DNA of 64,000 nucleotides from Isurus oxyrinchus (Eukaryota). Below are positions 1-40,364 of the stretch, one piece after another; the stretch's first letter is position 1, and each line of letters starts with the position of its first letter. The position numbers and the translations under genes are program-made. Where the stretch lies: positions 744,001 to 808,000 of the forward strand of contig JANJGN010000071.1 in assembly GCA_026770705.1 (NCBI GenBank). Direction: 5' to 3'. The notes beneath the pieces were generated by a model. That model saw only the letters and a list, made by a program, of their open reading frames with translations. It had not been told where the DNA came from and made no database searches.

Positions 1-119
1 TCGGGGTCAATCTGTGCCCGGGAGCATAAAGCAGCAAAATCAGGAGCCCGCTTTACATCTCTCTGAATTTTAACTATCATTAACCCCAGTAACATCCATT
101 CAAATGACTTAGTCATAAG

Positions 120-276
120 ATTCCTCACACATTCACTTGCACACTCACACACCCACACCCACACAGACACACTGACACACTCACTCATTCACATTGACAC
201 ACACTGACAGAGTCACACACACCCACACAGACACACTGACACACTCACTCATTCACATTGACACACACTGACACAG

Positions 277-312
<36 letters not shown>

Positions 313-460
313 ACACAATCACACACATTCACATTGACACGCACTGACAGTCACACATACACACACACACGCTGACACAATCACACACATTCACATTGAC
401 ACACACATATTGACAGTCACACACACACGCTCATAAAGACAGACACAAACACAGTCACGT
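120..460. repeat. Imperfect (CA)n microsatellite
   Basis: CA/CACT/GACA runs seen directly. Confidence 0.85.
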
Positions 461-635
461 GAGGTGAATAGTGTCGATGTATTTAAGGGGAAGCTGGATA
501 AACACACGAGGGAGAAATGAATAGAAGGATATGGTGATGGGGTGAGATGGAGAAGGGGTGGGCGGAGACTCGTGTGGAGCAGAAACTCCAGCATGGAACA
601 GATGGGCCGAATGGCTTCTTTCCCTGCTGTAAAAC
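460..635 (+). mobile_element. CR1-type LINE 3' end fragment
   Basis: gcatggaacagatgggccgaatggcttctttccctgctgt resembles the CR1 3' termini seen elsewhere in the window. Confidence 0.5.
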
Positions 636-759
636 GCAGGTAAAGATTCAGTTGGAATTAATGAACAGGGCCTGTGTGAAATAGATTGCTAAGCAGTAGA
701 TAAGGAGGGGAGAGGCTGTGGCATGGTGCAGGATGACCTTGCGTGAATGAGGCCAGGGT

Positions 760-876
760 CTAATATCTACAGCAGAGACCACAAGTCTCATTTGGTTCTC
801 TCCAATTACAGCAGTTACAGCAGAATCTGCAGAGCTGCTGTCTGCCCATTCTGTTCTGGCGCTGCAGCAAGGAGCC
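760..876 (-). CDS. hamp: Hepcidin-like gene, exon 3 (end of propeptide, RQNR convertase site, mature 8-Cys peptide)
   Basis: Acceptor ctgcttttccag|GGC at 876. Translation GSLLQRQNR-MGRQQLCRFCCNCCNWREPNETCGLCCRY*, with TAG at 762-760. The C-xx-CC-x-CC-(x)n-C-G-x-CC pattern after an RXXR site is the hepcidin signature. Confidence 0.9.
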   Translation of the reverse strand, partial: GSLLQRQNRMGRQQLCRFCCNCCNWREPNETCGLCCRY

Positions 877-959
877 CTGGAAAAGCAGGAGGACAATAGG
901 TGAGAACATTCCGGAAAGAAAGAAGGCATCATTTCAATCAGGCGCGTCATTGGAAGGAG

Positions 960-1340
960 GATGGCACATTTCCATAGCGCCTTTCCCCTCCTCAGGATGG
1001 CCCAAAGTGTTCCACAGCTGAAGGAAGGACTTTTTCTGAAGTGAGCTCACCGCTGTAATGTAGGAAACGCAGCAGGCAATTCACGCACAGCAAGATCCCA
1101 CAAACAGAAATGTGATAATGGCCCCGATTTTCAGTTTTTTACCAATGTCAGTTGAGGGATAAATGTTTGCCCCAGGAAAGCGGACATAACTCCACCCCAT
1201 CCAGCCCCCACCACCCCCTCCACACATACCCCCAACTCCTGACGCACTTCATTTAAATTGTGGCCATGGAATCCTCTACATCCATCTGAGAGGGCAGATC
1301 TTGTCTCAGTTTAACATCTCATCTGAAAGACAGCGCCTTC
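960..1340 (-). mobile_element. Deu-domain SINE (SacSINE1/AmnSINE-like)
   Basis: gcacagcaagatcccacaaac...gttgagggataaat core. Other copies lie at 3430-3720, 15770-16040 and 39905-40205. Confidence 0.6.
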
Positions 1341-1575
1341 AACAGTGCAGCACCCCCTCAGTATTGACCCTCCGACTGTGCAGCACTCCCTCAGTACTGA
1401 CCGTCTGACAATGCAGCACCCCCTCAGTACTGACCCTCCGACTGTGCAGTCCCCCGCCGGTACTGACCCTCTGACAGTGCAGCACTCCAAGACTGACCGT
1501 CTGACAATGCAGCACCCCCTCAGTACTGATCCTCCGACTGTCCTGCCCCCCCGCCGGTACTGACCCTCCGACAGC
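1340..1575. repeat. 33-bp minisatellite (CAGTACTGAGGGAGTGCTGCACTGTCAGAGGGT family)
   Basis: Tandem units seen directly, abutting the SINE 5' region. Confidence 0.9.
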
Positions 1576-1851
1576 TCGGTAATTTCTCAATTACGCCTGG
1601 TGGTCCTTTTAACTCAGAGCTGAGAGTTGCAGAGAATCGAGCAGACACCCTGAACTGACACTTGCAGTGCAAGTACTGGGAGTGCGCTGGTCATTATCAT
1701 GCTGCTGTCTGTGGGATCTTACAGTGCGCCAATGGCTGATTCTTTTCCCACAGTACATCAGTGACCTCACATGAAAGAAAACAAGCACTTGATTGTCTGC
1801 GAAACAGTTTGGGACGTCCTGATGTGTTGGAAGGCGCTAGAGAAATGCAAG

Positions 1852-2000
1852 AGTTGACGTTTCGAGTCCTCATGACCCTTCTGAGGACTCGAAACGTCAA
1901 CTCTTTTCTTCTCCGCCGATGCTGCCAGACCTGCTGAGTTTTTTCAGGTAATTCTGTTTTTGTTTTGGATTTCCAGCATCCGCAGTTTTCTTTGTTTTTA
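1852..2000 (+). mobile_element. Penelope-like element terminal fragment with inverted 5' end
   Basis: Short palindrome plus gatgctgccagacctgctgagtttt tail, flanked by a 14-bp direct repeat tagagaaatgcaag (~1838 and ~2001). Confidence 0.7.
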
Positions 2001-3266
2001 TAGAGAAATGCAAGTCCTCTTTGTCTTTCACTTGATCCTCTAAGGTGTCTGTTGATTAACCAGCCTCTCGGTGTATGATGTAGGCCTGGTTATAAACAGT
2101 TAGAAGGATCAAATATCAAAAGTGCTTTGGCTGACAGTCAAACCGATTGTGCATTCGGAGAGATTAGATACGGTCTGCGCACAATGACTCCAGTCTCTGG
2201 CACTGACTGCCGCCTGGGGTCTCCCTTCCACATAACACTCACAACTTGCATTTACACAGCGCCTCTGACATTGCAAAATGTCCCAGCCCACATTACCGGA
2301 GCATAAATCAGAGAGAAGTCTAACACTGAGTCACATATGGAGATATTAGGGATAGGTGACCAAAAGCTTGGTCAAAGATGTCAGTTTTTAAGGAGCGTCT
2401 TAAAGGAGAGAGAGAGAGAGAGGCAGAGAGGTTAAGGGAGGGTATTCCGGAGCTCAGGGCCCCAGGCAGCTGAAGGCACGGCCACCAATGGTGGAGCGAT
2501 GGGAATCAGGGGGACCCGGGAGATGCAGTAATGTCAGAGATTTTGGAGGAACATCGGGACCGGAGGAGGTGTTCTCCTGCTCCATATCTCTCTCTCTCTT
2601 CCTCTCTTCCACTCCTCCTCTCCCTGTCTCTCTCTCCTACTCTTCCTCTCAACTGCCCTCTCTCCCAATCTTTCTCTCCTCTCTCCCTTTTCCTGTCTCT
2701 CTCCCTCTCACTCCCCTGTCTCCTTCTCCCACTCTGTATCTCTCCCTCTCTCTCACACTATTTTTGTAACTTTCGCTCACTCTGTAACTCTCCCTTCCCT
2801 GTTAATTTCTCTCTCTTGGACAATCTCTCTTCCCTTTTCACTTTCCCTCACTCTGCATCTCTTTAATTTCTCCCTCTGTCACTCTCTCCCACCTATGTTC
2901 TTTCCCTTTCACCCCTCCCCGTCCCACTCTGTGTCTCTCCCTTCCAATCCCTCCCTCCCCCATTCCATCCCTCTCTCCGACTCTCGACTCCCAGCCTCTC
3001 TTTAACCCACTCCCAGGCTGGATCAGTCTCCCTCTCACTATTCCCGGCGTGGGTTACATTTAAAATTCCTGTGGGGATATGTTCACTTCCTTGGAATTGT
3101 CTCTTCCCAGCTTTGCAAAAAAGTTGGCGGGGGGGCTCGATTTCAAACCTGCCTCCTGAGTATAACCGAGACAGACTGCCACTGAAATCAGCTTGAAATC
3201 AGAAAACTTTCTGTGGAAGAAACGAGCAGGGAGAAACCTTAAAATAAGGAATGAATTTCCACCTAC

Positions 3267-3323
3267 CGTGTCCGGGGAATCCACAGATTTCTCAATCGTC
3301 GAAGAACCTAAAGCAGTGTCAAC
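3267..3323 (-). CDS. hamp: Hepcidin-like gene, exon 2 (propeptide, 57 nt)
   Basis: Acceptor ttctttctttttgcag| and donor ACG|gtaggt. Phase 0/0, reading VDTALGSSTIEKSVDSPDT in frame with exon 3. The size is close to the ~60-nt exon 2 of known hepcidins. Confidence 0.8.
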
Positions 3324-3429
3324 CTGCAAAAAGAAAGAATTTATCAGGGAGAAAGTGAGAGGAGGATTGAGGGAGAGGGAGAGAGAGAGAGAGAGGTACA
3401 GGAGAGAGAGGGGGAGGAGGACAGACTTG

Positions 3430-3950
3430 CATTTCTCTAACGCCTTTCACCACATCCCAAAGCATTTCACAGCCACTGAAGGATGTTTTTGAAGTGCACT
3501 CACACTGTAGGAAATGTGGCAGCTGATTTGTGCACAGCAAGATCCCACAAATAGCAATGTGATCATGGCCTAGATCATCTGTTTTTGGTGATGTTGGGTG
3601 AGGGATAAATATTGGTCCCAGGACACCGGGGAGAACACCCCCTGCTCTTCCTCCAAATAGTGGCTGTGGGATCTTTCACACCCGCCCGAGAGGGCAGACG
3701 GGGGACTCAGTTTAATGTCTCATTCAACATTGTTGTGCTCCCTCAGTACTAACCCTTTGACACTGCAGCACTCCCTCAGTACTGACCCTCCGACAGTGCA
3801 ACACTTCCACAGTACTGACCCTGTAACAATGCAGCACTTCCTCAGTACTGACCCTCCGACAGTATAGCACTCACTCAGTACTGTCCCTCCAATAGTGCAA
3901 CACTTCCACACTACTGACCCTCTGACAGTGCAGCACTCCCTCAGCACGGA
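3430..3950 (-). mobile_element. Deu-domain SINE plus 33-bp minisatellite
   Basis: Same SINE core as 960-1340, with the minisatellite at 3735-3950. Confidence 0.6.
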
Positions 3951-4009
3951 GTATTGACCTACGTTATGGGACTGAATTCCCTGGAGTGAGACTCAGACCA
4001 GAGATTTAG

Positions 4010-4790
4010 GTAGGGTTGTTCCGGCTGGAGGAGGTTACAGAGATAGGGAGGGTTGTAGAGGCTGTAGGAGGTAACTGAGATAGGGAGGATTCTAGAGGCT
4101 GTAGGAGGTTACAGAGATAGGGAGGGTTGTAGGGGCTGTAGGAGGTTACAGAGATAGGGAGGTGAGTAGGGGCTGTAGGAGGTTAAAGAGATGGGGGGGT
4201 TGTGGGGGCTGGAGGAGGTTACAGAGGTAGGGAGGGTTGTAGAGGCTGGAGGAGGTTACCAAAATAGATACTGTTGTAGGGGCCACAGTCGGTTACAGAG
4301 ATAGGGAGAGTTATAGTGTGGAGAGGACGTTATAGAGTTCATGAGCATTGTAGGGGCTGGAGGAGGTTACAGTGATTCTGAGGGTCGTGGGGCCTGGAGG
4401 AGGTTACAGAGATAGGGAGGGTTGTAGGGTCTGGAGGAGGTTACAGAGATAGGGAGGGTTGTAGGGGCTGGAGCAGGTTACAGAGATAGGGAGGGTTGTA
4501 GGGTCTAGAGGAGGTTACAGTGATCATGAGGGTTGTGGGGCCTGGGGGAGGTTACAGAGATAGGTAGGGTTGTAGGGGCTGGAGGAGGTAACAGAGATAG
4601 GGACAGTTGTAGGGGCTGGAGGAAGTTACAGAGATAGGGAGGGTTGTAGGAGCTGGAGGAGGTTACAGAGATAGGGAGGGTTGTAGGGGCTGGAGGAGGT
4701 TACAGAGATAGGGAGCGGTGTAGGGGCTGGAGGAGGTTACAGAGATAGGGAGGGTTGTAAGGCCTGGTGGACGTTACAGAGATAGGGAGT
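4010..4790. repeat. 37-bp minisatellite (GGAGGAGGTTACAGAGATAGGGAGGGTTGTAGGGGCT)
   Basis: About 20 tandem units inside hepcidin intron 1. Confidence 0.9.
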
Positions 4791-4991
4791 GGCTGAGGAG
4801 GGATTGAAAACAAGAATGAGAATTTCAGGGGAAACGACAGAAGGAAATGATGTTAAATTCATAGAGGGCGACAATATTAAAGGCACGAACATAATAATAT
4901 CAAACTGCGGAAGTGACCAGTCTATCTGGGTGGTAGATGTAGAGTCATGTGCAAGAAACACCTCACCCAGAGGGACATCTCTTAGCTTAAC

Positions 4992-5083
4992 CTCGACAAG
5001 GAGAAGAAGTGACTCAGCTGCAGGGAGAGCAGCAAAGTCAGAGTGAACAAGACAAGTCGCCATTTCATCTGGGAGCTTCCCAT
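4992..5083 (-). CDS. hamp: Hepcidin-like gene, exon 1 (signal peptide); donor apparently defective or out of phase
   Basis: gagATGG at 5083 gives MGSSQMKWRLVLFTLTLLLSLQLSHFFSLS, a basic n-region plus hydrophobic core. The only suitable GT (AG|gttaag) leaves 92 nt, phase 2, whereas exons 2 and 3 need phase 0. Confidence 0.7.
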
Positions 5084-5154
5084 CTCTGCCTGTCTCTTCT
5101 GATCTTCTGGCTCTGCTTTGATGCTTTGGTTTGTAACTAGAGGAGCTTCCTGCT

Positions 5155-5650
5155 CTTATACCTGAAACACTTGAAGGGGACAGCCGCGGGTGGGTAGCTG
5201 TGTGGTATCACACCCATTTCTGGATATTGCAGTGTCGATGTTCCCTGTCCCACTGGCCTGGGACCAGCAGTAAGGTCACTGGGACATTGACTGTCTGGCG
5301 CCGAGAACTATCAGTCCCTCCGCAACGCCCTTCACCTTGTGCAAATATGTGTTCATATTGATGCAACACAACATAGCAAAAACATAGGGGCTGGTTCTTA
5401 TGTCGGCAAATCAGGTGAAGCGCACGCCCCCTAACCCCTTACTCCTCTCATTGCTCCTCCTTCCTGCCAGACACTTACTATTTTACAAATTGTGTGCGTT
5501 GCTTTTATTTCGGACAAGGGGCCTCGAGGGGGAACTGATTTACGCTGAGGTTTAGGGGTTAACAGCCATGTCATGTGTTGATCGGTCAGTGTTTACCATG
5601 TGGAGACTGTCTGTCACCAGCTTTGTTAATGGTTTATCCAGGAACATTGA
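5155..5650 (-). promoter_or_regulatory. Putative hepcidin proximal promoter
   Basis: TATAAG at 5160-5155, 77 nt upstream of the ATG. GGCGCC at 5297-5302 followed by AGAC (Smad/BMP-RE-like). TTGTGCAA at ~5337 and TGATGCAA at ~5359 (C/EBP and C/EBP-ATF-like). GTTAATGGTTTAT at ~5625 (HNF1-like). Confidence 0.5.
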
Positions 5651-5759
5651 AGGGCATGAACGTTCTTGCTTTGTATGGAACAAGTTACCAACTGGGTTCA
5701 GTCATCGACTCAGACTCACATCAACATAAACTGGCTTCTGACAGGTAAGTTTCTATTAC

Positions 5760-6360
5760 ATAAGGGTAGGAGGAGGCCATTTGGCCCCTCGAGCCTGCTC
5801 CACCATTCAAAGAGTTCATGGCTGATCTGCAAACTAGCCCCATATGCCTTTGTCCCATCTCCTTTAATACCTTTGGATAACAAAAATCTATCAGTCTCAC
5901 AGGTTTAAAATGAACAACTTGATCGTGCATCAGTTTCAGTTTGGGGAAGACCGTTCCAAATTTCTCCCACCCTTTGTACTTCCTAATTTAATTCCTTTTT
6001 AGGCTCTGACCCCGAGTCCCAGACTCCCCCCAACCAGGGGAAATGGTTTCTCTTTATTGCCCCCAATCTGTTCCCCTTATTATCATGCAAACTTTCATCA
6101 AATCTCCTGCTTAACATTCTAACTTCCAGGGAATACAAGCCGAGTTTGTGTTTAATCTCTCCTTGTGATTTAACCCTTGGAGTCCCGGTCTCATTCTGGT
6201 AAACTGACACTGCTCTCCCTCCGAGGTCAATATATCCTTCCTAAGGTGTGGGGCCCAGAATGTCTCACAGTGACTCCAGGTGTGGTCTAGCCAGGGCTTT
6301 ATGTAGACTGAAGCATGACCTCTGCCCCCTTATATTCTAATCCGTGAGATAGAAAGGGCA
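5760..6360 (-). mobile_element. CR1 LINE 3' fragment
   Basis: Degenerate LGLYSLE..RL..D RT C-terminal motif (ORF 5983-6210) and the CR1 3' tail. Confidence 0.7.
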
Positions 6361-7439
6361 GAGTTCCAGAATTGTTGTGTTTATTCGACAACAGAATAAC
6401 AGAGGAAGGTTTCCTCTCTGCCCTCTTCAGCCCCACTGGGAAGGTCAGGATGAGAAGGTTGGGCTGGGTCCCCTGTACTGGACACTCGCTGAATCTTCCA
6501 ATGATAGTTCTGGGCTGGATTTCAAAACGCATAGACAAGGATTCAGTGTTCCATCACATTCTGCCTTTGTCTCTTTTCCTCTCGTTCTCTTTCTCTACCA
6601 TCCTCTCTCTCTATCTATCTATCTTTCTCCTCATTCTCTCCTGCTTCATCTCTATCACTTTCTTTCTACTTCTTTGTGTGTCTCTGTCTGTCTCTCTCTC
6701 TCACTCTTTCTTTCCTTGTCCTTATCTCTTTCAGTGTCTCCCTCTTTCTCTCTCTCTCTCTCTCTCTAAATGTGACCCTCTCTAACAGTTTGGCCCAGTA
6801 CTCTTATTTCCCTGTTTTACTGGTGTTCCATTTGAAGGTATACAAGACCAGATCAGACCAGAATGTTTATTTCCCAGTGTTTACTGTGTTTTTTTCATTC
6901 TGGGTGTCTCTCGACTCTGTCTGTCCCTCTCTGTCCTTTTATTTCATTCTTTCATGTGATGTGGACATCACTGCCCAGGCCAGCATTTATTGCCCAACCC
7001 GAATTGCCCTTGTTCAGAGGCCACTTTTTAAAAGTCAACCACATTGCTGTGGGTCTGGAGTCACATGTAGGCCAGACCAGGTAAGGACAGCAGATTTCCC
7101 TCCCTATAGGGCATTTGTGACCCAAATACAAGAATCGGCAATGGTTTCCTGGTCATCATCGGACTTTTAATTCCAGGTTTTTATTGAGTTCAAATTCCAC
7201 CAACTGCTGTGGTGGGATTCTAACCAGGGTCCCAGGAGCATTACACTGGGTCTCTGGATTACTGGTCCAGTGAAAATACCATCAGGCCAACACCTCCCCA
7301 CTCTTCCCTTCCTCCATCTTTCACACTTGTTCTGTCTCTCTCTCACTCTCCTTCTCTCTTCTCCCTCTCTCAGTCTCTGTCTGTCTCTCAATCTCTCTAT
7401 CGCTCTCTCTCTCCCTGTCGCTCTCTCTCTGACTGTCTC

Positions 7440-7950
7440 CCTCCCTATCTCTGTAACCTCCTCTCTCTGTCCTTTTCCTCCAGCCCCTACAACCCTCCCT
7501 ATCTCTGTAACCTCCACCAGCCCCTACAATCCTCCCCATCTCTGTAACCTCCTCCACCTCCCACAACCCTCCCTATATCTGTAACCTCCTCCACAAGCCC
7601 ATACAATCCTCCCTATCCCTGTAACAACCTCCAGCCCGACAACACCCCTATACATGTCACCTCCTCTAGCCACTGTAACCCTAATAATCTCCCAAGCCTC
7701 CACCAGCCTTGACAATCCTGCCCATCTCTGTAACATCCTCCAACCACCACAACCCTCCCTATTTCTGTAACCTCCTCCAGCCCCTACAACCCTCCCTATC
7801 TCTGCAACAGCTTCCAGCACCTACAACCCTCCCTATCTCTGTAACCTCCTCCAGCCCCTACAACACTCCTTATCTCTGTAACCTCCTCCAGCCCCTACAA
7901 CCCTCCCTATCTCTGTAACCTCCTCCAGCCCCTGTAACCCTCCCCATCTC
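7440..7950. repeat. 37-bp minisatellite (reverse orientation)
   Basis: ccctccctatctctgtaacctcctccagcccctacaa units. Confidence 0.9.
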
Positions 7951-8339
7951 TTGAAGGGTTCTCAAAATTTCCAACTGTCAAGGAACCCTGGGTTGGTGAG
8001 CGTGACCCCTGACCTCTCCTAGTGCAATTTAGTTAGGGTTTGGGGGATGGGACAAGGGTAAGGGCATTAGTAGCATGATTCTCCCTCGTTATGCCGTGTG
8101 TTCCCCATTCTTAACTCAGTGTACTTTGTAAGTCTGTATAATCTCAGTGTCATCCTAATGTTAGAAGTTCATTTGTGACTTCAGTAAACTCAGTTTTTGT
8201 CTTGCACCAAAACCAGTTGTCTGCTGCACTTTGTGACAAGCCCCGAATAAGTCCAAGGTCTAGAACCCAGGGAGTGGGAGCGATTCAGACGGCTCAGAAG
8301 TCGCAGGTGAAGCTGACACACACCACCACACCCTACAAG

Positions 8340-8830
8340 GGGCTGAATGGCCTCCTCCTGTTCCTGTGTAATGGGCATCAGTGGCTGAATGGCCTCCTCC
8401 TGTTCCTGTATAACGGACATAAGTGGCAGAATGGCCTCCTCTTGTTCCTGTGTAACGGACATAAGTGGCAGAATGGCCTCCTCCTGTTTCTGTGTAACAG
8501 TCTTGAGGGGGCTGAATGGCCTCCTCCTGTTCCTGTGTAACAGTCTCGAGGGGGCTGAATGGGCCTCCTCCAGTTCCTGTGTAACAGACATCAGTGGCTG
8601 AATGGGCTTGCTCCTGTTCCTGTGTAACAGGCTTGAGGGGGCTGAATGGCCTCCTCCTGTTCCTGTGTAACAGGCTCAAGGGGCTGAATGGCCTCCTCCT
8701 GTTCCTGTGTAACAGGCTCGAGGGGGCTGAATGGCCTCCTCCTGTTCCTGTGTAACAGGCTCAAGGGGCTGAATGGCCTCCTCCTGTTCCTGTGTAACAG
8801 GCTCGACGGGCTGAATGGCCTCCTTCTGCA
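8340..8830. repeat. ~42-bp minisatellite derived from the CR1 3' end
   Basis: gggctgaatggcctcctcctgttcctgtgtaacaggctc units. Confidence 0.85.
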
Positions 8831-8849
8831 CTGTAAACTTGTTGTGATA

Positions 8850-9085
8850 CTGTAACTGCCTCTTTGGTTTCATTCAGCTGAATCTTCAGCTCTTCAGTCT
8901 CTTCCTTGTATCTCTTGCCTTCCTCCTGGAACATTGGACATGGTTGGGTCTTCCCTGCCAACTGTTTCTTCAGTTTGCTCAGAGCGGCACAGAATTCGCT
9001 TTCTTTCTCTTCAGGATTTTCCAGTGGAACCAACTCTGACCTGAGGGACACTTGCAGCCTGTGAGGATGCTTCAATTCTTCAAAC
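8850..9085 (-). pseudogene. Coiled-coil coding fragment, possibly UACA/RAI14/ANKRD24-like
   Basis: FEELKH...SELVPLENPEEKESEFCAALSKLKKQLA...EETEELKIQLNETKEA is heptad-like. The family assignment is from memory only. Confidence 0.35.
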
Positions 9086-10199
9086 TCATTCCGAGATACA
9101 CTCTCATATTCCCCCAGCAACTCAGCAACTCCTCCAGTGAAACATTTCAGAGCAGCTGAGCTTGGTTTTCTGGAACCAGTCTCGGCCCAGAAGACTAGGG
9201 CCCTCACCTGTCGCTATGATCACTGGAAGCTGGGCTGTCTGCTGCCTGTAGGACACAGGTACTGGGATGAGGTCCTTTCCCTGTATGGATTCTCCAGTGT
9301 GTGTCTTCAGCTGATCCATTGTTGGCTCTAAATTCAGCGTCTGGGTTCCTTCATTTAGCTGTTTAAATGTGGGCTCTTCCACCACTGTGTCTGAGGCTCC
9401 CGTATCTGCCCCATTACTAGTGGCTGCCCATTCACTTGGGTTGTGATGGTTATAGGTTCAGTTTTTAGCACTGTGACATTGGACAGGGAATAGACATCGG
9501 TATCAGCAGCTTCAGGCTCTGTGATATTATTCACTTCCATCATGTTGGTGCACTGCCTGATGGGCTGTCTCGATTTCACCCTGCATTGCTTTATTACCCG
9601 CCCCTTTCTTGTGGCAGTGATGGCATTCTGCTCCCTTGAACCTGCAGGTGTCCGGTACGTGCTCAATGCCCCCCACATCGAGAACAGGCCAACTTCGGAG
9701 TTGCTGCTGAAATACTCCCACGAAGCCTTTTAGTTTCTGGAGCGGCAGATACTGTCTCTCGCTTGGCGGCTGTCTCTCTCTCTCTCTCTCTCTCTCCAGT
9801 TTGAGCCTCACGCCCGGTGGTTGGTTCCTGTCCCAGCTGAGGACTGGTGCCATGTTGTACATCCTGTAAATCCCGCCAGTCTCTCCCAGCATTTTCCATG
9901 CCTGGCGCTATTTCCATGGTGCGCTTCAAATCGATGTCGGCTTCTGCGAGTAAACGGCTCTGAATGGCGTTGGGGTGAACGACACAAACCAATCGGCCCC
10001 GCAACATGTCATTGAGTGTGTCTCCGAGGTCCCAGTGCTCAGTCACCTGCTTCCACTTCACTGTATAGGTTGCGATGGACTCTCCCGGGGCCCTTACTCT
10101 GGAGTTAAACTTAAACATTTTCATTATTACCCACGGCTTCAGCTGAAAACACATCTTCATGAGGTCGACTAATTGGTGAAAAGATTTAGAATTGGGTGC
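9085..10199 (-). mobile_element. Gypsy LTR-retrotransposon internal fragment (gag, zinc knuckle, protease), frameshifted
   Basis: FKFNSRVRAPGESIATY, LNDMLRGRLVC, CSRCGG-H/CHHCHKKG knuckles and GEGPSLLGRDW. Confidence 0.85.
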
Positions 10200-11353
10200 A
10201 ATACACGTCACTGTCTTCAGCTCTGAGACTGTCAATCCTCACCAAACAATTCTTCCCTTCCAATTCGCCGATTATTTTAGCACGTCCCACGAATGTGGCT
10301 ATCGCATAATTGGGATCTTTGGTGTATGTGATGGTATATTTCCATCTATACCAATATTTATACCAAGCTCCGTGCAGTGCTGTGTAAGAGTGGGAAGGAA
10401 AGTCAAAGCTACACGGAATAACCACACAAGAGCTGCTGATGGCCCTCCGAGGCAGCGCCTTCATAGACCATCCCTCTGACGTCACTCCTGAAAGGCAACA
10501 AGGGAAGAGACAGGACATCAAAAAGCAGAATATTACTTCAATGGAGAGAGTCTACAGAATGCGGTACAGAGGGATCTGGGTGTCCATGCACATGAATCAC
10601 AGAAAGTCAGCATTCAGGAACACCACGGAATGAGGAAGGCAAGTGGAATGTTGGCCTTTATTGCAAAGGGATGGAGTATAAAAGGAGGGGAGTCTTGCTA
10701 CAACTGTACAGGGCGTTGGTGAGATTGTATCAGGAGCAGTGTGTACAGTTCTGGTCTCCTTACTTAGGGAGGGATAGACTCTGCATTGGAGGCAGTTCAG
10801 AGGAGGATCACTGGGCTGATTCCTGGGATGAAGGGGGTTTGTCTTATGAGGAAATGTTGAGCAGGTTGGGCCCTGTATCCATTGGAGTTTAGAAGAATGA
10901 GAGGTGATCTTATTGAAACATATAAGATTCTGAGGTGGTGGGGGGTTTGACAGGGTGGATGCTGAGGGGATGTTACCCCTTGTGGGGGAATCCTGTGAAG
11001 CAATAAGGATGTTTTACTGCATTAAAGGTGCTATATAAATGCACTGTCATTCCTATTGAAACAAGCTCTCTGCTGCACAAACAGAAAATGCTGGAAAAAC
11101 TCAGCAGGTCTGACAGCATCTGTGGAGAGAGAAACAGAGTTGGTGTTTCGAGTCCATATGAGGCTTTTTCTTTTGCTAAATTCTCTGACTCGCTAATCAC
11201 TCACTCTCTGTGTGATCACTAACCCTGTTCTCTAAAATTAAATGTTCACTTCCTCACTCCAGGAAAGAATCCAATTCCCTGAGTTCCGATCAGTAATGAA
11301 TTTGTACCTTGCAGCAAGCTGATGCAGATCAATATCAGACCGACCTCTCCCAT
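10186..11353 (-). pseudogene. Siglec-like leader (11353-11308) and V-set exon (10487-~10199), truncated by Gypsy sequence
   Basis: Leader MGEVGLILICISLLQG|gt is phase 1. V exon VTSEGWSM..SCVVIPCSFDFP..W..GRAKIIGELEGKNCLVRIDSLRAEDSDVY shows the Siglec Cys pattern and stops before the F-strand Arg. Confidence 0.85.
10530..10990 (+). mobile_element. CR1 LINE fragment in the leader-V intron
   Basis: LQLYRALVR..CVQFWSPYL motif (ORF 10671-10892). Confidence 0.8.
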
Positions 11354-11619
11354 CTTCAGTTCCTCATCTAAATGGAAATGATAAAGACAGAGACTTTTTC
11401 AGAAATTGTCCCTAGCGTTTCTTCCTCAAACAACAACTTGTGTTTAAATGGCACCTTTCAGGGAATTAAACAGCCCCAGGGAATAAACTAACGTCAAGAC
11501 AAGGAAGGAGAGATTGAGAAGGGACATCGCAAACTGATTCACCAAACACAGCAAAAATTCATTGTTCCCTCACTCCCTGTGCTGGGTGTCCAGCTTTTTC
11601 TCTCAGTGAGTTTAGCCCT

Positions 11620-13300
11620 CACAATCTGTCTCTATCACACTCTTCTGCTCTATCTCTCTCTCTCACACACACATTCTCTCTCTAACACTCACAATCTCTC
11701 TCTATCACACTCTTCTGCTCTATCTCTCTCTCTCTCTCACACACACACATTCTCTCTCTAACACTCACAATCTCTCTCTATCGCACTCTTCTGCTCTATC
11801 TCTCTCTCTCAAACACACTCATTCTCTCTCTAACACTCACATTCTCTCTCTATCGCACTCTTCTGCTCTATCTCTCTCTCTCTCACACACATTCTCTCTC
11901 TAACACTCACAATCTCTCTCTATCACACTCCTCTGCTCTATCTCACTCTCTCTCAGACACACGTTCTCTCTCTAACACTCACAATCTCTCTCTATCGCAC
12001 TCTTCTGCTCTATCTCTCTCTCTCAAACACACTCATTCTCTCTCTAACACTCACAATCTCTCTCTATCACACTCTTCTGCTCTATCTCTCTCTCACACAC
12101 ACACATTCTCTCTCTAACACTCACAATCTCTCTCTATCACACTCTTCTGCTCTATCTCTCTCTCTCACACACACACATTCTCTCTCTAACACTCACAATC
12201 TCTCTCTATCGCACTCTTCTGCTCTATCTCTCTCTCTCACACACACACATTCTCTGTCTAACACTCACAATCTCTCTCTATCGCACTCCTCTGCTCGATC
12301 TCTCTCTCACACACACACATTCTCTCTCTAACACTCACATTCTCTCTCTAACAATCACAATCTCTCTCTATCACACTCTTCTGCTCTATCTCTCTCTCTC
12401 TCACACACACACATTCTCTCTCTAACAAACACAATCTCTCTCTATCGCACTCTTCTGCTCTCTCTCTCTCTCACACACACACACACATTCTCTCTCTAAC
12501 ACTCACAATCTCTCTCTATCGCACTCTTCTGCTCTATCTCTCTCTCTCACACACATATTGTCTCTCTAACACTCACAATCTCTCTCTATCACACTCTTCT
12601 GCTCTATCTCTCTCTCTCTCACACACACATATTCTCTCTCTAACACTCACAATCTCTCTCTATCACACTCTTCTGCTCTATCTCTCTCTCTCTCACACAC
12701 ACATATTCTCTCTCTAACACTCACAATCTCTCTCTATCGCACTCTTCTGCTCTATCTCTCTCACACACACACATTCTCTCTCTAACACTCACAATCTCTC
12801 TCTATCACCCTCTTCTGCTCTATCTCTCTCTCTCACACACACACATTCTCTCTCTAACACTCACAATCTCTCTCTATCGCACTCTACTGCTCTATCTCTC
12901 TCTCTCTCTCTCACACACATTCTCTCTCTAACACTCACAATCCGTCTCTGTCGCACTCTTCTGCTCTATCTCTCTCACACACATATTCTCTCTCTAACAC
13001 TCACAATCTCTCTCTATCACACTCTTCTGCTCTATCTCTCTCTCTCTCACACACATTCTCTCTCTAACACTCACAATCTCTCTCTATCGCACTCTACTGC
13101 TCTATCTCTCTCTCTCTCTCACACACATTCTCTCTCTAACACTCACAATCCCTCTCTATCACACTCTTCTGCTCTATCTCTCTCTCACACACACACACAT
13201 TCTCTCTCTAACACTCACAATCCCTCTCTGTCGCACTCTTCTGCTCTATCTCTCTCTCACACACACACATTCTCTCTCAGACACTCACAATCTCTCTCTC
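11620..13300. repeat. Compound CT/CA satellite with a ~62-bp higher-order unit
   Basis: Recurring unit ctaacactcacaatctctctctatcacactcttctgctctatc(tc)n(ac)natt. Confidence 0.9.
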
Positions 13301-17413: not shown

Positions 17414-18116
17414 ATGTGTAGGCACATACATGCACATTTACACACAGTCATACACGTGCAAAAACCTACACAGAAACATACACACACTCAACTCACACAC
17501 ACACACTCACACGTGCACACACATACACATACACATGTACACACATTCACTTATGCACAGAAATATACACAAAGACACACGCACATTTGCGCAAACACAT
17601 ACACACATGCACACACAGACACATGCATGCATACTCACACAAACATACTCACATATGTAGAAACACAAACACATAAACATAAACACGCGTGAGGTCCCTC
17701 TTCTCTCTCAGGGCTGCACTGGAGTCTCGGTGTCAGCTCCGATTCTGTGTTGAAGGAAGGTAAACTCCAGATCAACAAGACCCTGAACTGGATGAGCAAC
17801 CTCCTGAACAGAGAATTGTAGATTTACCCCTCAGTGTTCCATCGATCAAATACAATTCATTCCCGTAAATCCCTTGGCAAAATCCTGAGGATGTGAAAGT
17901 TTCTTTCATTCTAGGTGAACAGCACCTCTACTGGTGGGAGAATGTAACTCCAGTTTGACTGTTTACATAGGCAGTGTCCATTATAAATTTGACAGTGGAA
18001 TTTATATGGAGGGAAGGTATCTGGAAATGCATACAGACATCAGATACAGAGAGATGATGCATGGAGTCTTGCTGTGCACGCTGCTTGCTCACATTAAACA
18101 CTTGATTTGTTCTTAG

Positions 18117-18398
18117 ATGCTCCACAGAATCTCACATTTACTTCTCTTGAAATGATTAATGCTTCATCGATCAATATAATTGAGGGGAATTCTGCAGTGA
18201 TAATCTGCTCTGTCGAGAGCTTCCCAGCTTCTAACCTGACGTGGCGACATCTTAATGTCCCAATGAACAGAACAAGTTCCAACAATGAGCTGTGGTTGGT
18301 GATTCCTCACGTTACATCCAGGGACACTGGAGACTATCAGTGTGTGGCAGAGAATGAACATGGAGCAGTGGAGGGGTTCATAACCATCACTGTGGAAC
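18117..18398 (+). CDS. Siglec-like inhibitory receptor, C2-set Ig exon (copy 1)
   Basis: ttcttag|AT...GAAC|gtgagt, 282 nt, phase 1/1. Reads APQNLTF..IEGNSAVIICSVESFPASNLTW..DTGDYQCVAENEHG. Confidence 0.88.
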
Positions 18399-19160
18399 GT
18401 GAGTGTACACAGACTTCAACATCACTCACACACACACACTCACACATGCAAAAACACTCATGTGTAGACACAAACATGCACGCTTACACACAAACATACG
18501 TTCAAACACATACACAGAAACACACACAAACTCAACTCANNNNNNNNNNNNNNNNNNNNNNNNNNNNNNNNNNNNNNNNNNNNNNNNNNNNNNNNNNNNN
18601 NNNNNNNNNNNNNNNNNNNNNNNNNNNNNNNNNNNNNNNNNNNNNNNNNNNNNNNNNNNNNNNNNNNNNNNNNNACAGACACGCGCATAAACACAAATAC
18701 AAACTCACGTGCAGAAGTACACACACAAGTGTGAGCTCCCTCTCCTCTCTCAGTTCTGCACTGGAGTCATGGTATCAGCTCCCATTCTGTGCTGAAGGAA
18801 GGTAAACTCCAGATCAGCAAGACCCTGAATTGGATGAGCAACCTCCTGAACAGAGAAATGTAGATTTAGCCCTCAGTGCTCCATCGATCAAATACAATTC
18901 ATTGCCTATCAAGCCCTTGGGGACATCTTGAGAGTGTTAAAGGATGTTTCTTTCATTCTAGAGGGTTAGCAACTCTACTGGTGGGAGGAAGCAACTGCAG
19001 TGTGACAGTTTACATAGGAAGTGTCCATTATAAATATGACAGTAATTTTTCCTGAGGGAAGGTACCTGGAAAAGCATTCCAACATCAGATACAGAGAGAT
19101 GATGCATGGAGTCTTGCTGTGCACTATGCTTGCTCACATTAAAATCTTTATTTCTTTTAG

Positions 19161-19441: not shown

Positions 19442-20262
19442 GTGAGTTANNNNNNNNNNNNNNNNNNNNNNNNNNNNNNNNNNNNNNNNNNNNNNNNNNN
19501 NNNNNNNNNNNNNNNNNNNNNNNNNNNNNNNNNNNNNNNNNNNNNNNNNNNNNNNNNNNNNNNNNNNNNNNNNNNNNNNNNNNNNCACACATGCATAATT
19601 ATCCACACACAGTCATACACATAGAAGCACATACACAGAAAAATACACACCCATCTCAAACACACACACACATTCATGCCCACACATAGACACACACATG
19701 CACATACTCTCACTCATGGACAGACCTAGACACACAGACACATGCGCATGCGCACACACAGACACATGTGTGCATACACACACAAACACATTCACATGTG
19801 CAGAAACACAAACACACAGATACACACACGTGAGTTCCCTGTCCTCTCTCAGTGCCGCACTGGAGTCTTGGTATCAGCTCCGATTCTGTGTTGAAGGAAG
19901 GTAAACTCCAGATCAACAAGACCCTGAATTGGATGAGCAACCTCCTGAACAGAGAATTGTAGATTTACCCCTCAGTGCTCCATCAATCAAATACAATTCA
20001 TTGCCTGTCCAGCCCTTTGCGAAATCCTGAGGATGTGAAAGCAAGCTTCTTTCATTCTAGATGGACAACACCTCTACTGGTGGGAGAATGCAACTGCAGT
20101 GTGACAGTTTACATAGGCAGTGTCCATTAAAAATGTGGCATAAGACGTTATCCTGAGGGAAGTTACCTGGAAATGCATTCAGACATCAGATACAGAGAGA
20201 TGATGCATGGAGTCTTGCTGTGCAATAGGTTTGCTCACATTAAACACTTGATTTGTTTTTAG

Positions 20263-20544
20263 ATGCACCACAGGATCTCTCATTTACTTCGCTTAATATG
20301 ATTTACGCTTCATCAATCAATATAATTGAGGGGAATTCTGCAGTGATAATCTGCTCTGTCGAGAGCTTCCCAGCTTCTAACCTGACGTGGCGACATCTTA
20401 ATGTCCCAATGAACAGAACAAGTTCCAACAATGAGCTGTGGTTGGTGATTCCTCACGTTACATCCATGGACACTGGAGACTATCAGTGTGTGGCAGAGAA
20501 TGAACATGGAGCAGTGGAGGGGTCCATAACCATCACTGTGGAAC
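20263..20544 (+). CDS. Siglec-like inhibitory receptor, C2-set Ig exon (copy 3)
   Basis: tttttag|AT...GAAC|gtgagt, 282 nt, intact, with both Ig cysteines. Confidence 0.88.
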
Positions 20545-21354
20545 GTGAGTGTGGAGATACATTTGTTTGTTTGTTGTCTCCGTGGTCTCTGTGGAGCCAT
20601 TGGGATCGTGTTGTTTTTAATCCAGTTTTCTTCAATCCTCGCTCAGTCCACGTTATCCACACATCCAATTTTTCCTCTCCCTTTCTGTTTTTGCTCTCAG
20701 TTTCTCCTTCAATGGTTGTGAGGACAAGGCTGTCAGGTCTTCGTTTCCAATCTCCGTACTTGATGAACTTTCTCTCTCTAACTGTCCTGAACAACCCTTT
20801 TAATTGCTGAACTTCTCATTCTTTAATTGATAAATATTATATATAAATGTTACATGTTGAAATGCAACTATTGTATTCATAAATTGCTTAGAAATTACTA
20901 AACATTCAACAGCCAGTGAAGCATTATCGAAGTGAGCTCACTGTTGTAATGTAGGAAACGCAGGTACTGATTTGTGCACAGCAAGATCCCGCAAACCACC
21001 GTGTGATAATGACCTGATAGTCGATTATTTCAGTGAGGTTGGTTGTTACATATGTAGAGACTACATACCCTTTAGGGAGGTAAGCATGTCTCGATGTGGA
21101 TGTGACTCCAGTCTCAGACACCAACATGGTTAACTCTTACCTGCCCTCTGAACTGGTCTCCCAGTTTGGGACAAACCAGTGGTTCAGGAGGAAGACCCCC
21201 CACCACCTTCTCAAGGGGAAACTAGGGATGGACAATAAATGTCAGCATTGCCCGAGAATGAGTATTTAAACACTGAGTGAGTGTATCGCTTCTCGAGATA
21301 CATCGGAGCATCATTGTAAACCTGTAGTGCAGTAATTAATGGCTGTTTTTACAG

Positions 21355-31329: not shown

Positions 31330-32497
31330 ATGGGAGAGGTCGGGCTGATATTGATCTTCATCAGCTTGCTGCAAGGTACAAATTCATTACTGATCGGAAC
31401 TCAGGGAATTGGATTCTTTCCTGGAGTGAGGAAGTGAACATTTAATTTTAGAGAACAGGGTTAGTGATCACACAGAGAGTGAGTGATTAGCGAGTCAGAG
31501 AATGTAGCAAAAGCAAAAGTCTCATACGGACTCGAAACACCAACTCTGTTTCTCTCTCCACAGATGCTGTCAGACCCGCTGAGTTTTTCCAGCATTTTCT
31601 GTTTGTGCATCAGAGAGCTTGTTTCAATAGGAATGACAGTGCATTTATATAGCACCTTTAATGCAGTAAAACATCCTTATTGCTTCACAGGATTCCCCCA
31701 CAAGGGGTAACATCCCCTCAGCATCGACCCTGTCAAACCCCCCACCACCTCAGAATCTTATATGTTTCAATAAGATCACCTCTCATTCTTCTAAACTCCA
31801 ATGGATACAGGGCCCAACCTGCTCAACATTTCCTCATAAGACAAACCCCCTTCATCCCAGGAATCAGCCCAGTGATCCTCCTCTGAGCTGCCTCCAATGC
31901 AGAGTCTATCCCTCCCTAAGTAAGGAGACCAGAACTGTACACACTGCTCCTGATACAATCTCACCAACGCCCTGTGCAGCTGTTGCAAGACTTCCCTCCT
32001 TTTATACTCCATCCCTTTGCAATAAAGGCCAACATTCCACTTGCCTTCCTCATTCCGTGCTGTTCTTGAATGCTGACTTTCTGTGATTCATGTACAAGGA
32101 CACCCAGATCCCTCTGTACCGCATTCTGCTGCCTCTCTCCATTGAAGTAATATTCTGCTTTTTGATGTCCTGTCTCTTCCCTTGTTGCCTTTCAGGAGTG
32201 ACGTCAGAGGGATGGTCTATGAAGGTGCTGCCTCGGAGGGCCATCAGCAGCTCTTGTGTGGTTATTCCGTGTAGCTTTGACTTTCCTTCCCACTCTTACA
32301 CAGCACTGCACGGAGCTTGGTATAAATATTGGTATAGATGGAAATATACCATCACATACACCAAAGATCCCAACTATGGGATGGCCACATTCGTGGGACG
32401 TGCTAAAATAATCGCCGACTTGGAAGGGAAGAATTGTTTGGTGAGGATTGACAGTCTCAGAGCTGAAGACAGTGACGTGTATTGCACCCAATTCTAA
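31330..32497 (+). pseudogene. Siglec-like leader (31330-31375) and V-set exon (32196-~32482), truncated by Gypsy sequence
   Basis: Leader MGEVGLILIFISLLQG|gt, acceptor tttcag| at 32196, V-set to DSDVY followed by CTQF*. Confidence 0.85.
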
Positions 32498-34569: not shown

Positions 34570-36470
34570 AGAGATAGGGAGGGTTGTACGGGCTGGAGGA
34601 GATTACAGAGATAGGGATGGTTGTAGGGGCTGGAGGAGATTACAGAGATAGGGAGGGTTGTACGGGCTGGAGGAGGTTACAGAGATAGGGAGGGTTGTAG
34701 GGGCTGGTGGAGGTTACAGAGATTGGGATTGTTGTAGGGGCTGGAGGAGGTTACAGAGATAGGGATTGTTGTAGGGGTTGGAGAAGGTTACAGAGATAGT
34801 GAGGGTTGTAGGGGTTGGAGGAGGTTACAGAGATAGTGAGGGTTGTAGGGGTTGGAGGAGGTTACAGAGATAGTGAGGGTTGTAGGGGTTGGAGGAGGTT
34901 ACAGAGATAGGGAGGGTTGTAGGGGTTGGAGGAGGTTACAGAGATAGGGAGGGGTGTAGGGGTTGAAGGTGGTTACAGAGATGGGAAGGGTTGTGGGGGT
35001 TGGAGGTGGTTACAGATATAGGGAGGGGTGTAGGGGTTGAAGGTGGTTACAGAGATGGGGAGGATTGTAGGGACTGGAGGAGGTTACAGAGATAGGGAGG
35101 GTTGTAGGGGCTGGAGGAGGTTACAGAGATAGGGAAGGTTGTAGGGGCTGGAGGAGGTTACAGAGATAGGGAAGGTTGTAGGGGCTGGAGGAGGACACAG
35201 AGATAGGGAGGGTTTTAGGGGCTGGAGGAGGTTACAGAAATAGGGAGGGTTGTAGGGGCTGGAGGATGACACAGAGATAGGGCGAGTTGCAGGGGGTGGA
35301 GCAGGTTGTAGAGATAGGGAGGGTTGTAGGGACTGGAACAGATTACAGAAATAGGGAGGGTACTGGGGGTTGGAGGAAGTTACAGAGATGGGGAGCATTG
35401 TCAAGGCTGGTGGAGGCTTGAGAGATAGGGAGTGTTACAGTGGCTAGGAGGTTACAGGTATAAGGGTGTTGTGGGGCTGGAGGTTGTTACAGAGATAGAG
35501 AGGATTGTATGGGCTTGTGGAGGAGGTTACATATATAGGAAGGGTTGGAGGAGGTTACAGAGATGGGGAGGACTGTAGAGGATGGAGGAGGTTACAGAGA
35601 TAGGGATTGTTGTAGGGGCTGGAGGAGGTTACAGAGATAGGGAGGGTTATAGGGACTGGAGGAGGTTACAGAGATAGGGAGGGTTGTAGAGACTGTAGGA
35701 TGTTACAGAGATAGGGATTGTTGTAGGGGCTGGAGGAGGTTACAGAGATAGGGAGGGTTGTAGGGGCTGGAGGAGGTTACAGAGATAGGGATTGTTGTAG
35801 GGGCTGGAGGAGGTTACAGAGATAGGGAGGGTTGTAGGGGTTGGAGGAGGTTACAGAGATAGGGAGGGTTGTAGGGGTTGGAGGAGGTTAATGAGATAGG
35901 GATGGTTGTAGGGGTTGGAGGAGGTTAATGAGATAGGGATGGTTGTAGGGGTTGGAGGAGGTTACAGAGATAGTGAGGGTTGTAGGGGTTGGAGGAGGTT
36001 ACAGAGATAGTGAGGGTTGTAGGGGTTGGAGGAGGTTAATGAGATAGGGATGGTTGTAGGGGTTGGAGGAGGTTACAGAGATAGTGAGGGTTGTAGGGGC
36101 TGGAGGAGGTTACAGAGATAGTGAGGGTTGTAGGGGTTGGAGGAGGTTACAGAGATAGGGAGGGTTGTAGGGGTTGGAGGAGGTTACAGAGATAGGGAGT
36201 GGTGTAGGGGCTGGAGGAGGTTACAGAGATAGGGAGGGTTACAGGGGCTGGAGGAGGTTACAGGTATAGGGAGGGGTGTAGGGGTTGAAGGTGGTTACAG
36301 AGATGGGGAGGGTTGTGGGGGTTGGAGGTGGTTACAGATATAGGGAGGGGTGTAGGGGTTGAAGGTGGTTACAGAGATGGGGAGGATTGTAGAGGCAGGT
36401 GGAGGCTGCCTAAGGGAGGGTTGTAGGGGCTGGAGGAAAGGGAGAGAGAGAGGAGGTTACAGATATAGGT
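34570..36470. repeat. 37-bp minisatellite, ~1.9 kb
   Basis: About 50 tandem units, much longer than its mirror at 7440-7950. Confidence 0.92.
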
Positions 36471-37799: not shown

Positions 37800-38295
37800 T
37801 CAATGTTCCTGGATAAACCATTAACAAAGCTGGTGACAGACAGTCTCCACATGGTAAACACTGACCGATCAACACATGACATGGCTGTTAACCCCTAAAC
37901 CTCAGCGTAAATCAGTTCCCCCTCGAGGCCCCTTGTCCAAAATAAAAGCAACGCACACAATTTGTAAAATAGTAAGTGTCTGGCAGGAAGGAGGAGCAAT
38001 GAGAGGAGTAAGGGGTTAGGGGGCGTGCGCTTCACCTGATTTGCCGACATAAGAACCAGCCCCTATGTTTTTGCTATGTTGTGTTGCATCAATATGAACA
38101 CATATTTGCACAAGGTGAAGGGCGTTGCGGAGGGACTGATAGTTCTCGGCGCCAGACAGTCAATGTCCCAGTGACCTTACTGCTGGTCCCAGGCCAGTGG
38201 GACAGGGAACATCGACACTGCAATATCCAGAAATGGGTGTGATACCACACAGCTACCCACCCGCGGCTGTCCCCTTCAAGTGTTTCAGGTATAAG
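37800..38295 (+). promoter_or_regulatory. Duplicate hepcidin promoter
   Basis: GGCGCC at 38148-38153, TATAAG at 38290-38295, TTGCATCA at ~38084 and TTGCACAA at ~38106. Confidence 0.5.
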
Positions 38296-38366
38296 AGCAA
38301 GAAGCTCCTCTAGTTACAAACCAAAGCATCAAAGCAGAGCCAGAAGATCAGAAGAGACAGGCAGAG

Positions 38367-40364
38367 ATGGGAAGCTCCCAGATGAAATGGCGACTTGTCT
38401 TGTTCACTCTGACTTTGCTGCTCTCCCTGCAGCTGAGTCACTTCTTCTCCTTGTCGAGGTTAAGCTAAGAGATGTCCCTCTGGGTGAGGTGTTTCTTGCA
38501 CATGACTCTACGTCTACCACCCAGATAGACTGGTCTCTTCCGCAGTTTGATATTATTATGTTCGTGCCTTTAATATTGTCGCCCTCTATGAATTTAACAT
38601 CATTTCCTTCTGTCATTTCCCCTGAAATTCTCATTCTTGTTTTCAATCCCTCCTCAGCAACTCCCTATCTCTGTAACCTCCTCCAGCCCCTACACCCCTC
38701 CCTATCTCTGTAACCTCCTCCAGCCCGTACAACCCTCCCTATCTCTGTAAACTCCTCCAGCCCCTACAACCCTCCCTATCTCTGTTACCTCCACCAGGCC
38801 TTACAACCCTCCCTATCTCTGTAACCTCTTCCAGCCCCTACACCCCTCCCTATCTATGTAACCTCCTACAGTCCCCACAACACTCCCTATCTCTGTAACC
38901 TCCCCCAGGCCCCACAACCCTCACGATCACTGTAACCTCCTCCAGACCCTACAACCCTCCCTATCTCTGTAACCTGCTCCAGACCCTACAACCCTCCCTA
39001 TCTCTGTAACCTGCTCCAGACCCTACAACCCTCCCTATCTCTGTAAAGTCCTCCAGGCCCCACAACCCTCACAATCACTGTAACCTCCTCCAGCCCCTAC
39101 AATCCTCCTGAACTCTATAACCTCCTCTCCACACTATAACTCTCCCTATCTCTGTAACCTACTGTGGCCCCTACAGCAGTGTCTATTTTGGTAACCTCCT
39201 CCAGCCTCTACAACCCTCCCTACATCTGTAACCTCCTCCAGCCCCCACAACCACCCCATCTCTGTAACCTCCTACAGCCCCTACACACCTCCCTACCTCT
39301 GTAACCTCCTCCAGCCCCCACAACTCCCCCATCTCTGTAACCTCCTACAGCCTCTACAACCCTCCCTATCTCTGTAACTTCCTACAGCCCTTACAACCCT
39401 CCCTATCTCTGTAACCTCCTACAGCCTCTACAGCCCTCCCTATTTCTGTAACCTCTTCCAGCCCCTACAACCCTCCCTATCTCTGTAACCTCCTACAGCC
39501 TCTACAACCCTCCCTATCTCTGTAACTTCCTACAGCCCTTACAACCCTCCCTTTCTCTGTAACCTCCTACAGCACCCACAACCCTACCTAAATCACTGGT
39601 CTGAGTCTCACTCCAGGGAATTCAGTCCCATAATGTAGATCAACGCTCCGTGCTGAGGGAGTGCTGCAATCTCAGAGGGTCAGTAGTGTGGAAGTGTTGC
39701 ACTATTGGAGGGACAGTACTGAGGGAGTGCTATACTGTCGGAGGTCAGTACTGAGGGAGTGCTGCAGTGTCAAAGGGTTAGTACTGAGGGAGCGATGCAC
39801 TGACGGAGGGACAATACTGTGGGAGTGCAGCACTATCGAAGGGTTAGTACTGAGCGAGTGCTGCAGTGTCAAAGGGTTAGTACTGAGGGAGCGCAACAAT
39901 GTTGAATGAGACATTAAACTGAGTCCCCCGTCTGCCCTCTCGGGCGGGTGTGAAAGATCCCACAGCCACTATTTGGAGGAAGAGCAGGGGGTGTTCTCCC
40001 CGGTGTCCTGGGACCAATATTTATCCCTCAACCAACATCACCAAAAACAGATGATCTAGGCCATGATCACATTGCTATTTGTGGGATCTTGCTGTGCACA
40101 AATCAGCTGCCACATTTCCTACAGTGTGAGTGCACTTCAAAAACATCCTTCAGTGGCTGTGAAATGCTTTGGGATGTGGTGAAAGGCGTTAGAGAAATGC
40201 AAGTCTGTCCTCCTCCCCCTCTCTCTCCTGTACCTCTCTCTCTCTCTCTCTCCCTCTCCCTCAATCCTCCTCTCACTTTCTCCCTGATAAATTCTTTCTT
40301 TTTGCAGGTTGACACTGCTTCAGGTTCTTCGACGATTGAGAAATCTGTGGATTCCCCGGACACG
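38367..40364 (+). pseudogene. hamp: Truncated hepcidin duplicate (exon 1 38367-38458, exon 2 40308-40364, no exon 3 found)
   Basis: Same signal-peptide exon and VDTASGSSTIEKSVDSPDT exon. Homology stops at ~41250, short of exon 3. Confidence 0.75.
38660..39590. repeat. 37-bp minisatellite (reverse orientation)
   Basis: Mirror of 4010-4790. Confidence 0.9.

Follow-up and report, generated by a model that had tools for sequence, protein, structure and literature searches.

Hepcidin, the master iron hormone in vertebrates, is encoded by a three-exon gene, HAMP, whose last exon holds the mature peptide. The textbook example of a division into iron-type and defence-type hepcidins comes from teleosts. 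The key ferroportin-interaction motif has been placed in the first nine hepcidin residues (excerpts of PMC7915682 and of bioRxiv 10.1101/2020.03.16.993006). In the sea bass, according to excerpts of PMC5665920, Hamp1 (the QSH-type peptide) regulates ferroportin while Hamp2 does not. The same excerpts state that many teleosts have many hepcidin genes, and they give sea bass peptides in which the loop between the fifth and sixth cysteines reads RGNKG (Hamp1, QSHLSLCRWCCNCCRGNKGCGFCCKF) or PNMSG (Hamp2, HSSPGGCRFCCNCCPNMSGCGVCCRF); in human hepcidin this loop is HRSK (PMC7915682, Table 1). Within the literature searched on hepcidin in sharks and other cartilaginous fish there was no description of a peptide such as the one reported here, and the hits were passing mentions only: detection of hepcidin in nurse shark plasma (an excerpt of PMC9207270), one sentence of a fish antimicrobial-peptide review (PMC6795676) and, in PMC3832898, an entry in the reference list. 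The peptide strings themselves were not found in the papers searched.

Here we describe a hepcidin-family gene with an unusually long loop in a 64,000-nucleotide stretch of DNA from Isurus oxyrinchus (hereafter the window). Minus-strand positions 763–849 translate into a 29-residue mature peptide with eight cysteines at positions 7, 10, 11, 13, 14, 23, 26 and 27, whose spacing (C-x2-CC-x-CC-loop-C-x2-CC) equals that of the human and sea bass peptides except in loop length. The loop between Cys5 and Cys6, NWREPNET, has eight residues and contains N-E-T; the peptide has no histidine, and R + K minus D + E gives a net charge of +2. Translation and counts of cysteines and charges thereby bear out the initial annotation, which had described a peptide starting MGRQQL with this loop, this sequon, no histidine and a charge of about +2. 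Its contrast with published loops of four or five residues also agrees with the human and sea bass peptides as excerpted. The features of the locus are as follows:

5293–5302, minus strand: GGCGCC motif next to AGAC, GGCGCCAGAC, resembling a BMP-responsive element (candidate, from sequence).
5155–5160, minus strand: TATAAG box; the ATG lies about 70 nt downstream (read from sequence).
4991–5083, minus strand: coding part of exon 1, MGSSQMKWRLVLFTLTLLLSLQLSHFFSLSR, with a hydrophobic signal-peptide-like core (translation; contig joint 3323 to 4991; signal peptide judged by eye).
4989–4990, minus strand: first two bases of the intron-1 donor, TT (AGG/TTAAGC, the slash marking the exon boundary; sequence).
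3324–4990, minus strand: intron 1, with a 37-bp satellite and SINE-like repeats (contig joint; TRF).
3267–3323, minus strand: exon 2, pro-region VDTALGSSTIEKSVDSPDT (translation; joints on both sides).
877–3266, minus strand: intron 2, GT..AG (contig joint 875 to 3266, cut +1).
850–876, minus strand: first part of exon 3, which completes the pro-region with GSLLQRQNR, after acceptor ttttccag/ (sequence; convertase site RQNR at 850–861).
763–849, minus strand: mature peptide, MGRQQLCRFCCNCCNWREPNETCGLCCRY (translation, Pfam, cysteine count).
784–807, minus strand: C5–C6 loop, NWREPNET (translation; sequon N-E-T at 784–792).
600–762, minus strand: stop codon (762–760) and 3′ UTR running beyond 600 (a 444-nt contig of run X3 covers 600–875 and continues).
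38148–40683, plus strand: inverted truncated hepcidin duplicate (blastn, alignments, translations).

The mature peptide at 763–849 is encoded in the last exon (763–876) of a genuine hepcidin-family gene. Its 49-aa open reading frame matches the Pfam Hepcidin profile (PF06446) over profile positions 24–52 of 53 at 29.7 bits (E = 8.1e-07), above the curated cut-off of 27 bits; together with the comparison with human and sea bass peptides, this upholds the earlier reading of a hepcidin-family peptide that lacks the conserved hormone N-terminus. Across all six frames of the window the motif C..CC.CC...C..CC has a single match, this exon, and the same search found no second mature-peptide exon. A search of PDB sequences returned hybrid striped bass hepcidin, 1S6W, as its sole match (E = 0.26), with 15/20 aligned residues identical, including CRFCCNCC, P-N and CG.CCR, and with NWRE as the extra residues. 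A chance cysteine-rich reading frame is ruled out by the score against Pfam, by the splicing seen in contigs and by a layout typical of a hepcidin gene.

Other searches added little. A hepcidin cluster ranked second in the ESM Atlas with a score of 0.75, which lies below the 0.9 level and is a lead only, and a single-sequence AlphaFold2 model consisted of helices (pLDDT 68, pTM 0.36) and is untrustworthy for a disulfide-rich 38-mer. Searches for homologous proteins gave no candidates with the 49-aa frame and none with a 57-aa stop-free stretch (a search sized for precursors of about 88 aa), results that say little about vertebrate proteins. The 38-aa exon-3 product had three matches among representative proteins (E up to 0.001), two of which proved on examination to be repeat-like translations, not hepcidins. 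Exon 1 alone had no match in Pfam, and the window had none in Rfam.

The gene around this exon was traced with Logan contigs of four public runs (X1, X3, X5 and X6) placed on positions 600–5250; the RNA label of these runs is a guess, and the spliced joints show that they contain RNA. Intron 1 is removed in 8 X1 contigs (joint 3323 to 4991) and intron 2 in 9 X1 contigs and one X3 contig, with 49 letters on the short side. As read from the sequence, the layout is that of a hepcidin gene, with a putative TATA promoter, a putative signal peptide, a short pro-region, an R-X-X-R site and an eight-cysteine peptide. Summed contig depth, a poor measure, is 170,000–650,000 in the exon bins of X1 against about 600–1,200 in non-repeat intron bins, and by the same poor measure reaches only about 30–100 in the exon bins of X3, a run from the same sample. 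These figures are a hint of strong, tissue-restricted expression. At the TATAAG box the X1 depth falls from 307,176 (bin 4968–5123) to 13,380 (bin 5124–5250), again with depth as a poor measure. Among the rows listed for X1 and X3, none within 763–876 has another letter at 10% or more, so the abundant mRNA encodes the same mature peptide.

Measured against human hepcidin-25 and sea bass Hamp1, the locus is alike in the order of its eight cysteines, in the six residues before Cys1, in its R-X-X-R site, in having three exons of which the last encodes the peptide and in a proximal-promoter GGCGCC. It is unlike them in its front end (MGRQQ versus DTHFP or QSHLS, with no X-X-His, or ATCUN, motif) and in its loop, which has four or five residues there and eight here. 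With teleost Hamp2 (sea bass; 1S6W) it has in common the CRFCCNCC core, P-N-x-S/T in the loop, the CG.CCR[F/Y] end, the lack of a Q-S-H front end, coexistence with a standard type in the same animal and an expanded gene family. However, the Hamp2 loop has five residues, and the long-loop type apparently derives from its own lineage's standard gene, which would make it an analogue.

The initial annotation had suggested an iron-hormone-type paralogue elsewhere in the genome, and one X1 contig, from the same animal, encodes the front end of such a peptide. This contig fits the window down to position 847 and continues with 38 unlike letters. What is seen of the paralogue is 30 displayed letters, which translate by hand (reverse complement, in the frame of codon 849–847) to SHLSICMYCC, following the Q-S-H-L-S-L-C-R-W-C-C pattern of sea bass Hamp1. 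Compared with GRQQLCRFCC of the window copy, 11/30 bases and 7/10 residues differ; none of the differences is synonymous, and the three Cys codons, the first three of the peptide, are identical. Upstream, up to and including codon 849–847, the contig and the beginning of exon 3 agree at the 95% threshold used. The animal has a second, standard-type hepcidin, whose pro-region coding sequence is shared with the long-loop type and which becomes sharply different where the mature peptide begins.

A kept pro-region joined to a rewritten mature peptide would be expected of a duplication within the lineage followed by fast change, or of partial gene conversion. This suggests that the long-loop type arose independently of teleost hamp2 and is its analogue, not its orthologue; the annotation's "independently derived" peptide is thus favoured as an inference from one X1 contig. 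Another X1 contig matches the 3′ UTR up to position 713, from where, toward the coding side, its next 255 letters are unlike the window. This contig may come from the 3′ end of a further hepcidin paralogue. A contig of organism B has 11 differences from the window.

The pro-region ends in RQNR (850–861), a minimal R-X-X-R convertase site directly before MGRQQL, and cleavage after it would give the MGRQQL start. The point at which the standard-type contig departs, immediately behind the Met codon, agrees with cleavage after RQNR in both types. Overlapping RQNR is a second R-X-X-R, RMGR (841–852), created by the derived Gly-Arg; cleavage there could yield a shorter form starting QQLC.

Immunoglobulin-domain exons flank the gene, with Ig-type Pfam matches in 5/8 stretches scanned, and by these matches the hepcidin copies sit inside a putative Ig-receptor gene cluster. 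Siglec-like V-set and C2/I-set exons lie at 47106–47390 (minus strand), 10186–10521 (minus), 32090–32497 (plus), 18107–18400, 20253–20560 (plus), 55990–56265 and 61223–61642 (minus). The exon at 47106–47390 matches sialoadhesin, Siglec-5, -7, -8 and -10, CD33 and MAG among 39 PDB sequences, and also pIgR and antibody V domains; it contains YFFR, a motif typical of Siglec V-sets. The Siglec/MAG-like Ig genes nearby are a further likeness to the iron-regulatory hepcidin; in mammals HAMP lies beside MAG.

Repeats are abundant around these genes. The 37-bp satellite of intron 1 (4007–4789, 21.2 copies, 82% matches by TRF) recurs around both hepcidin copies at about 7476–7951, 34570–36437 and 38661–39590, and at 120–460, just downstream of the hepcidin 3′ UTR, lies a long low-complexity stretch rich in CA, in which 'cacattgacacacactgaca' recurs. 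Two near-identical 141-aa open reading frames lie in opposite orientation at 43829–44254 (plus) and 62818–63243 (minus). Reading frames at 57147–58624 (minus) resemble those of interspersed repeats; the one at 57147–57695 had no Pfam match. A scan of 5000–5500 for bacterial-type promoters and terminators, which is inapplicable to this genome, returned nothing.

The initial annotation read the peptide of this copy correctly and missed its exon-1 donor, which has TT in place of GT (TCGAGG/TTAAGC). The in-frame mRNA (TCGAGG + GTTGAC) needs a cut at this TT, and the contig joint skips CT..AA on the plus strand, that is TT..AG in gene sense, with one ambiguous letter. Reading intron 1 as GT..CA gives the same mRNA, but with a non-canonical acceptor, and was rejected. 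The only GT nearby (AG/GTTAAG) shifts the frame and on translation runs into LTLL-stop in exon 2. AGG/TTAAGC otherwise fits the donor consensus well, the exception being position +1, and the simplest reading would be a G-to-T change at donor +1 of an ancestral AGG/GTAAGC.

The same TT donor recurs, by alignment, in the inverted duplicate. There, exon 1 (38367–38459) is identical to that of the first copy, exon 2 (40308–40364) has one Leu-to-Ser change and the promoter motif GGCGCCAGAC stands at 38148–38157 (plus strand). The duplicate has no exon 3: homology stops at 2949, opposite 40683, and the window holds no second Cys motif. In a blastn comparison of 1–12000 with 28000–64000, the segment from 2949 to beyond 12000 matches 40683 down to 30701 in inverted orientation at 87–96% identity. 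Beyond 40683 the duplicate runs into SINE-like arrays.

Two markers set the window copy apart from the dominant mRNA. Position 646 is A in the window and T in 498,813/500,502 of X1 depth (99.7%) and in all X3, X5 and X6 depth, and at the junction of exons 2 and 3 the variant at 3268 (c to t in gene sense, Thr to Met) has a depth of 13,927 versus 2,475 for the window form; the window copy therefore probably contributes little. At position 4993 one sample has three alleles (a, c and t), which implies that two or more loci are expressed. In our view the window copy is probably impaired in splicing and a weak or dead gene of the family, with most of the peptide coming from sister loci. It would instead be a fully working locus if AGG/TTAAGC were spliced, or if the true donor were GT and the T at 4990 reflected a misassembly or a rare allele. 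The in-frame junction is the best supported (8 contigs, depth 10,270), exons 1–3 are otherwise intact when translated separately, exon by exon, and the presence of the same donor base in the inverted duplicate would be odd for a lethal lesion. The out-of-frame junction is also absent among the joints listed. Against a working locus, the contigs are not assignable to any one locus, and an identical mRNA could come from sister copies with GT, while the marker at 646 disagrees in nearly all X1 depth and in the whole depth of the other three runs. To our knowledge, moreover, a donor with T at +1 is almost never spliced. A working window locus is in our judgement unlikely, with a chance still large enough to be kept in mind, and we retain the splice-impaired reading.

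The role of the peptide that the sister loci would make is a separate matter. The conserved nine-residue hormone N-terminus with His3 was not found: MGRQQLCRF matches human DTHFPICIF at 2/9 residues and sea bass Hamp1 QSHLSLCRW at 3/9, keeping L6, C7, R8 and F9 and replacing His3 by Arg and the hydrophobic residue 4 by Gln. The changed first nine residues, the sea bass Hamp2 precedent and the closeness to 1S6W from C7 onward favour a non-ferroportin role, probably in defence, which we propose with moderate confidence. A net charge of only +2, weak for a classical cationic peptide, counts against the defence reading. The six residues before Cys1, the kept L6-C7-R8-F9 and the GGCGCC motif would likewise be compatible with a hormone, one that bound ferroportin through L6-C7-R8-F9 and the C-terminus and whose gene was driven by BMP/SMAD signalling. 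GGCGCC occurs twice in the 64 kb, both times in a hepcidin promoter, 214–219 nt upstream of the ATG and followed by AGAC; the promoter 10-mer, found in the window only at these two promoters, appeared in 0/100 shuffles. GGCGCC is also the motif of BRE1 and BRE2 of human hepcidin (excerpt of PMC3879105), and one library shows very high apparent expression. However, a single duplication gave rise to both sites, which are thus not independent, and the motif could have come down from the parent gene. The substitutions at positions 3 and 4 fall within the nine residues in which activity sits (PMC7915682 and 10.1101/2020.03.16.993006, as excerpted), and a QSHLSLC-like peptide in the same animal is available for the role. 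That the long-loop peptide is itself the iron hormone therefore strikes us as improbable. More doubtful still is a two-type system of cartilaginous fish in which the long-loop type, possibly glycosylated, would have a receptor of its own; the candidate would be the second ferroportin gene, lacking the Cys326 thiol, of some cartilaginous fish (Nemeth and Ganz review, PMC8235187, in excerpt). If this were true, the long-loop type would be no mere antimicrobial copy but part of a second hepcidin–ferroportin hormone pair.

As for glycosylation, N-E-T is present in the loop, as the initial annotation noted, but is not special. A sequon arises in 8.1% of 200,000 shuffles of the peptide with cysteines fixed, the generic expectation being about 13%, and N-M-S stands at the aligned loop position in sea bass Hamp2 and in bass hepcidin 1S6W (P-N-x-S/T), a parallel that the initial annotation had missed. 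The N-E-T sequon is within chance and not remarkable, and its use is possible but fairly unlikely. An N-glycan on Asn20, at the tip of the enlarged loop, would make this the first glycosylated hepcidin, and the sequon does have Thr, no Pro in its middle position and a place in the enlarged C5–C6 loop. Set against this are the 8–13% of such peptides that would carry a sequon by chance and the N-M-S of the teleost peptides. Asn20 is also only 10 residues away from the C-terminus and has a Cys close beside it, which is unfavourable for oligosaccharyltransferase, and native bass hepcidin was reportedly isolated unglycosylated. We regard glycosylation of the mature peptide as a poor prospect.

Our preferred account, which we hold as a whole to be somewhat better than an even bet, has three parts: a lineage-own long-loop paralogue, a non-ferroportin role and an impaired window copy. 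On this account the long-loop hepcidins form a multi-copy subfamily, and the window exon encodes the mature peptide of one of its members. The type may have been born by duplication within this lineage. Its mature peptide would then have changed, giving up the X-X-His front end and lengthening its loop by about three to four residues. The long-loop type, like teleost Hamp2, may have moved to host defence or another non-ferroportin role, with the standard type presumably keeping iron control. The window copy, with its donor +1 G-to-T change and two marker mismatches, is probably weak or dead, and sister loci would make most of the peptide.

The window copy alone adds little, since it is probably splice-impaired. 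A separate split in a cartilaginous-fish lineage would have left the pro-region in place, changed the first residues and lengthened the hairpin loop, with numerous gene copies set between Siglec-like genes. Nature would thereby have run a second experiment, showing which parts of hepcidin are required for ferroportin binding and which can evolve freely.
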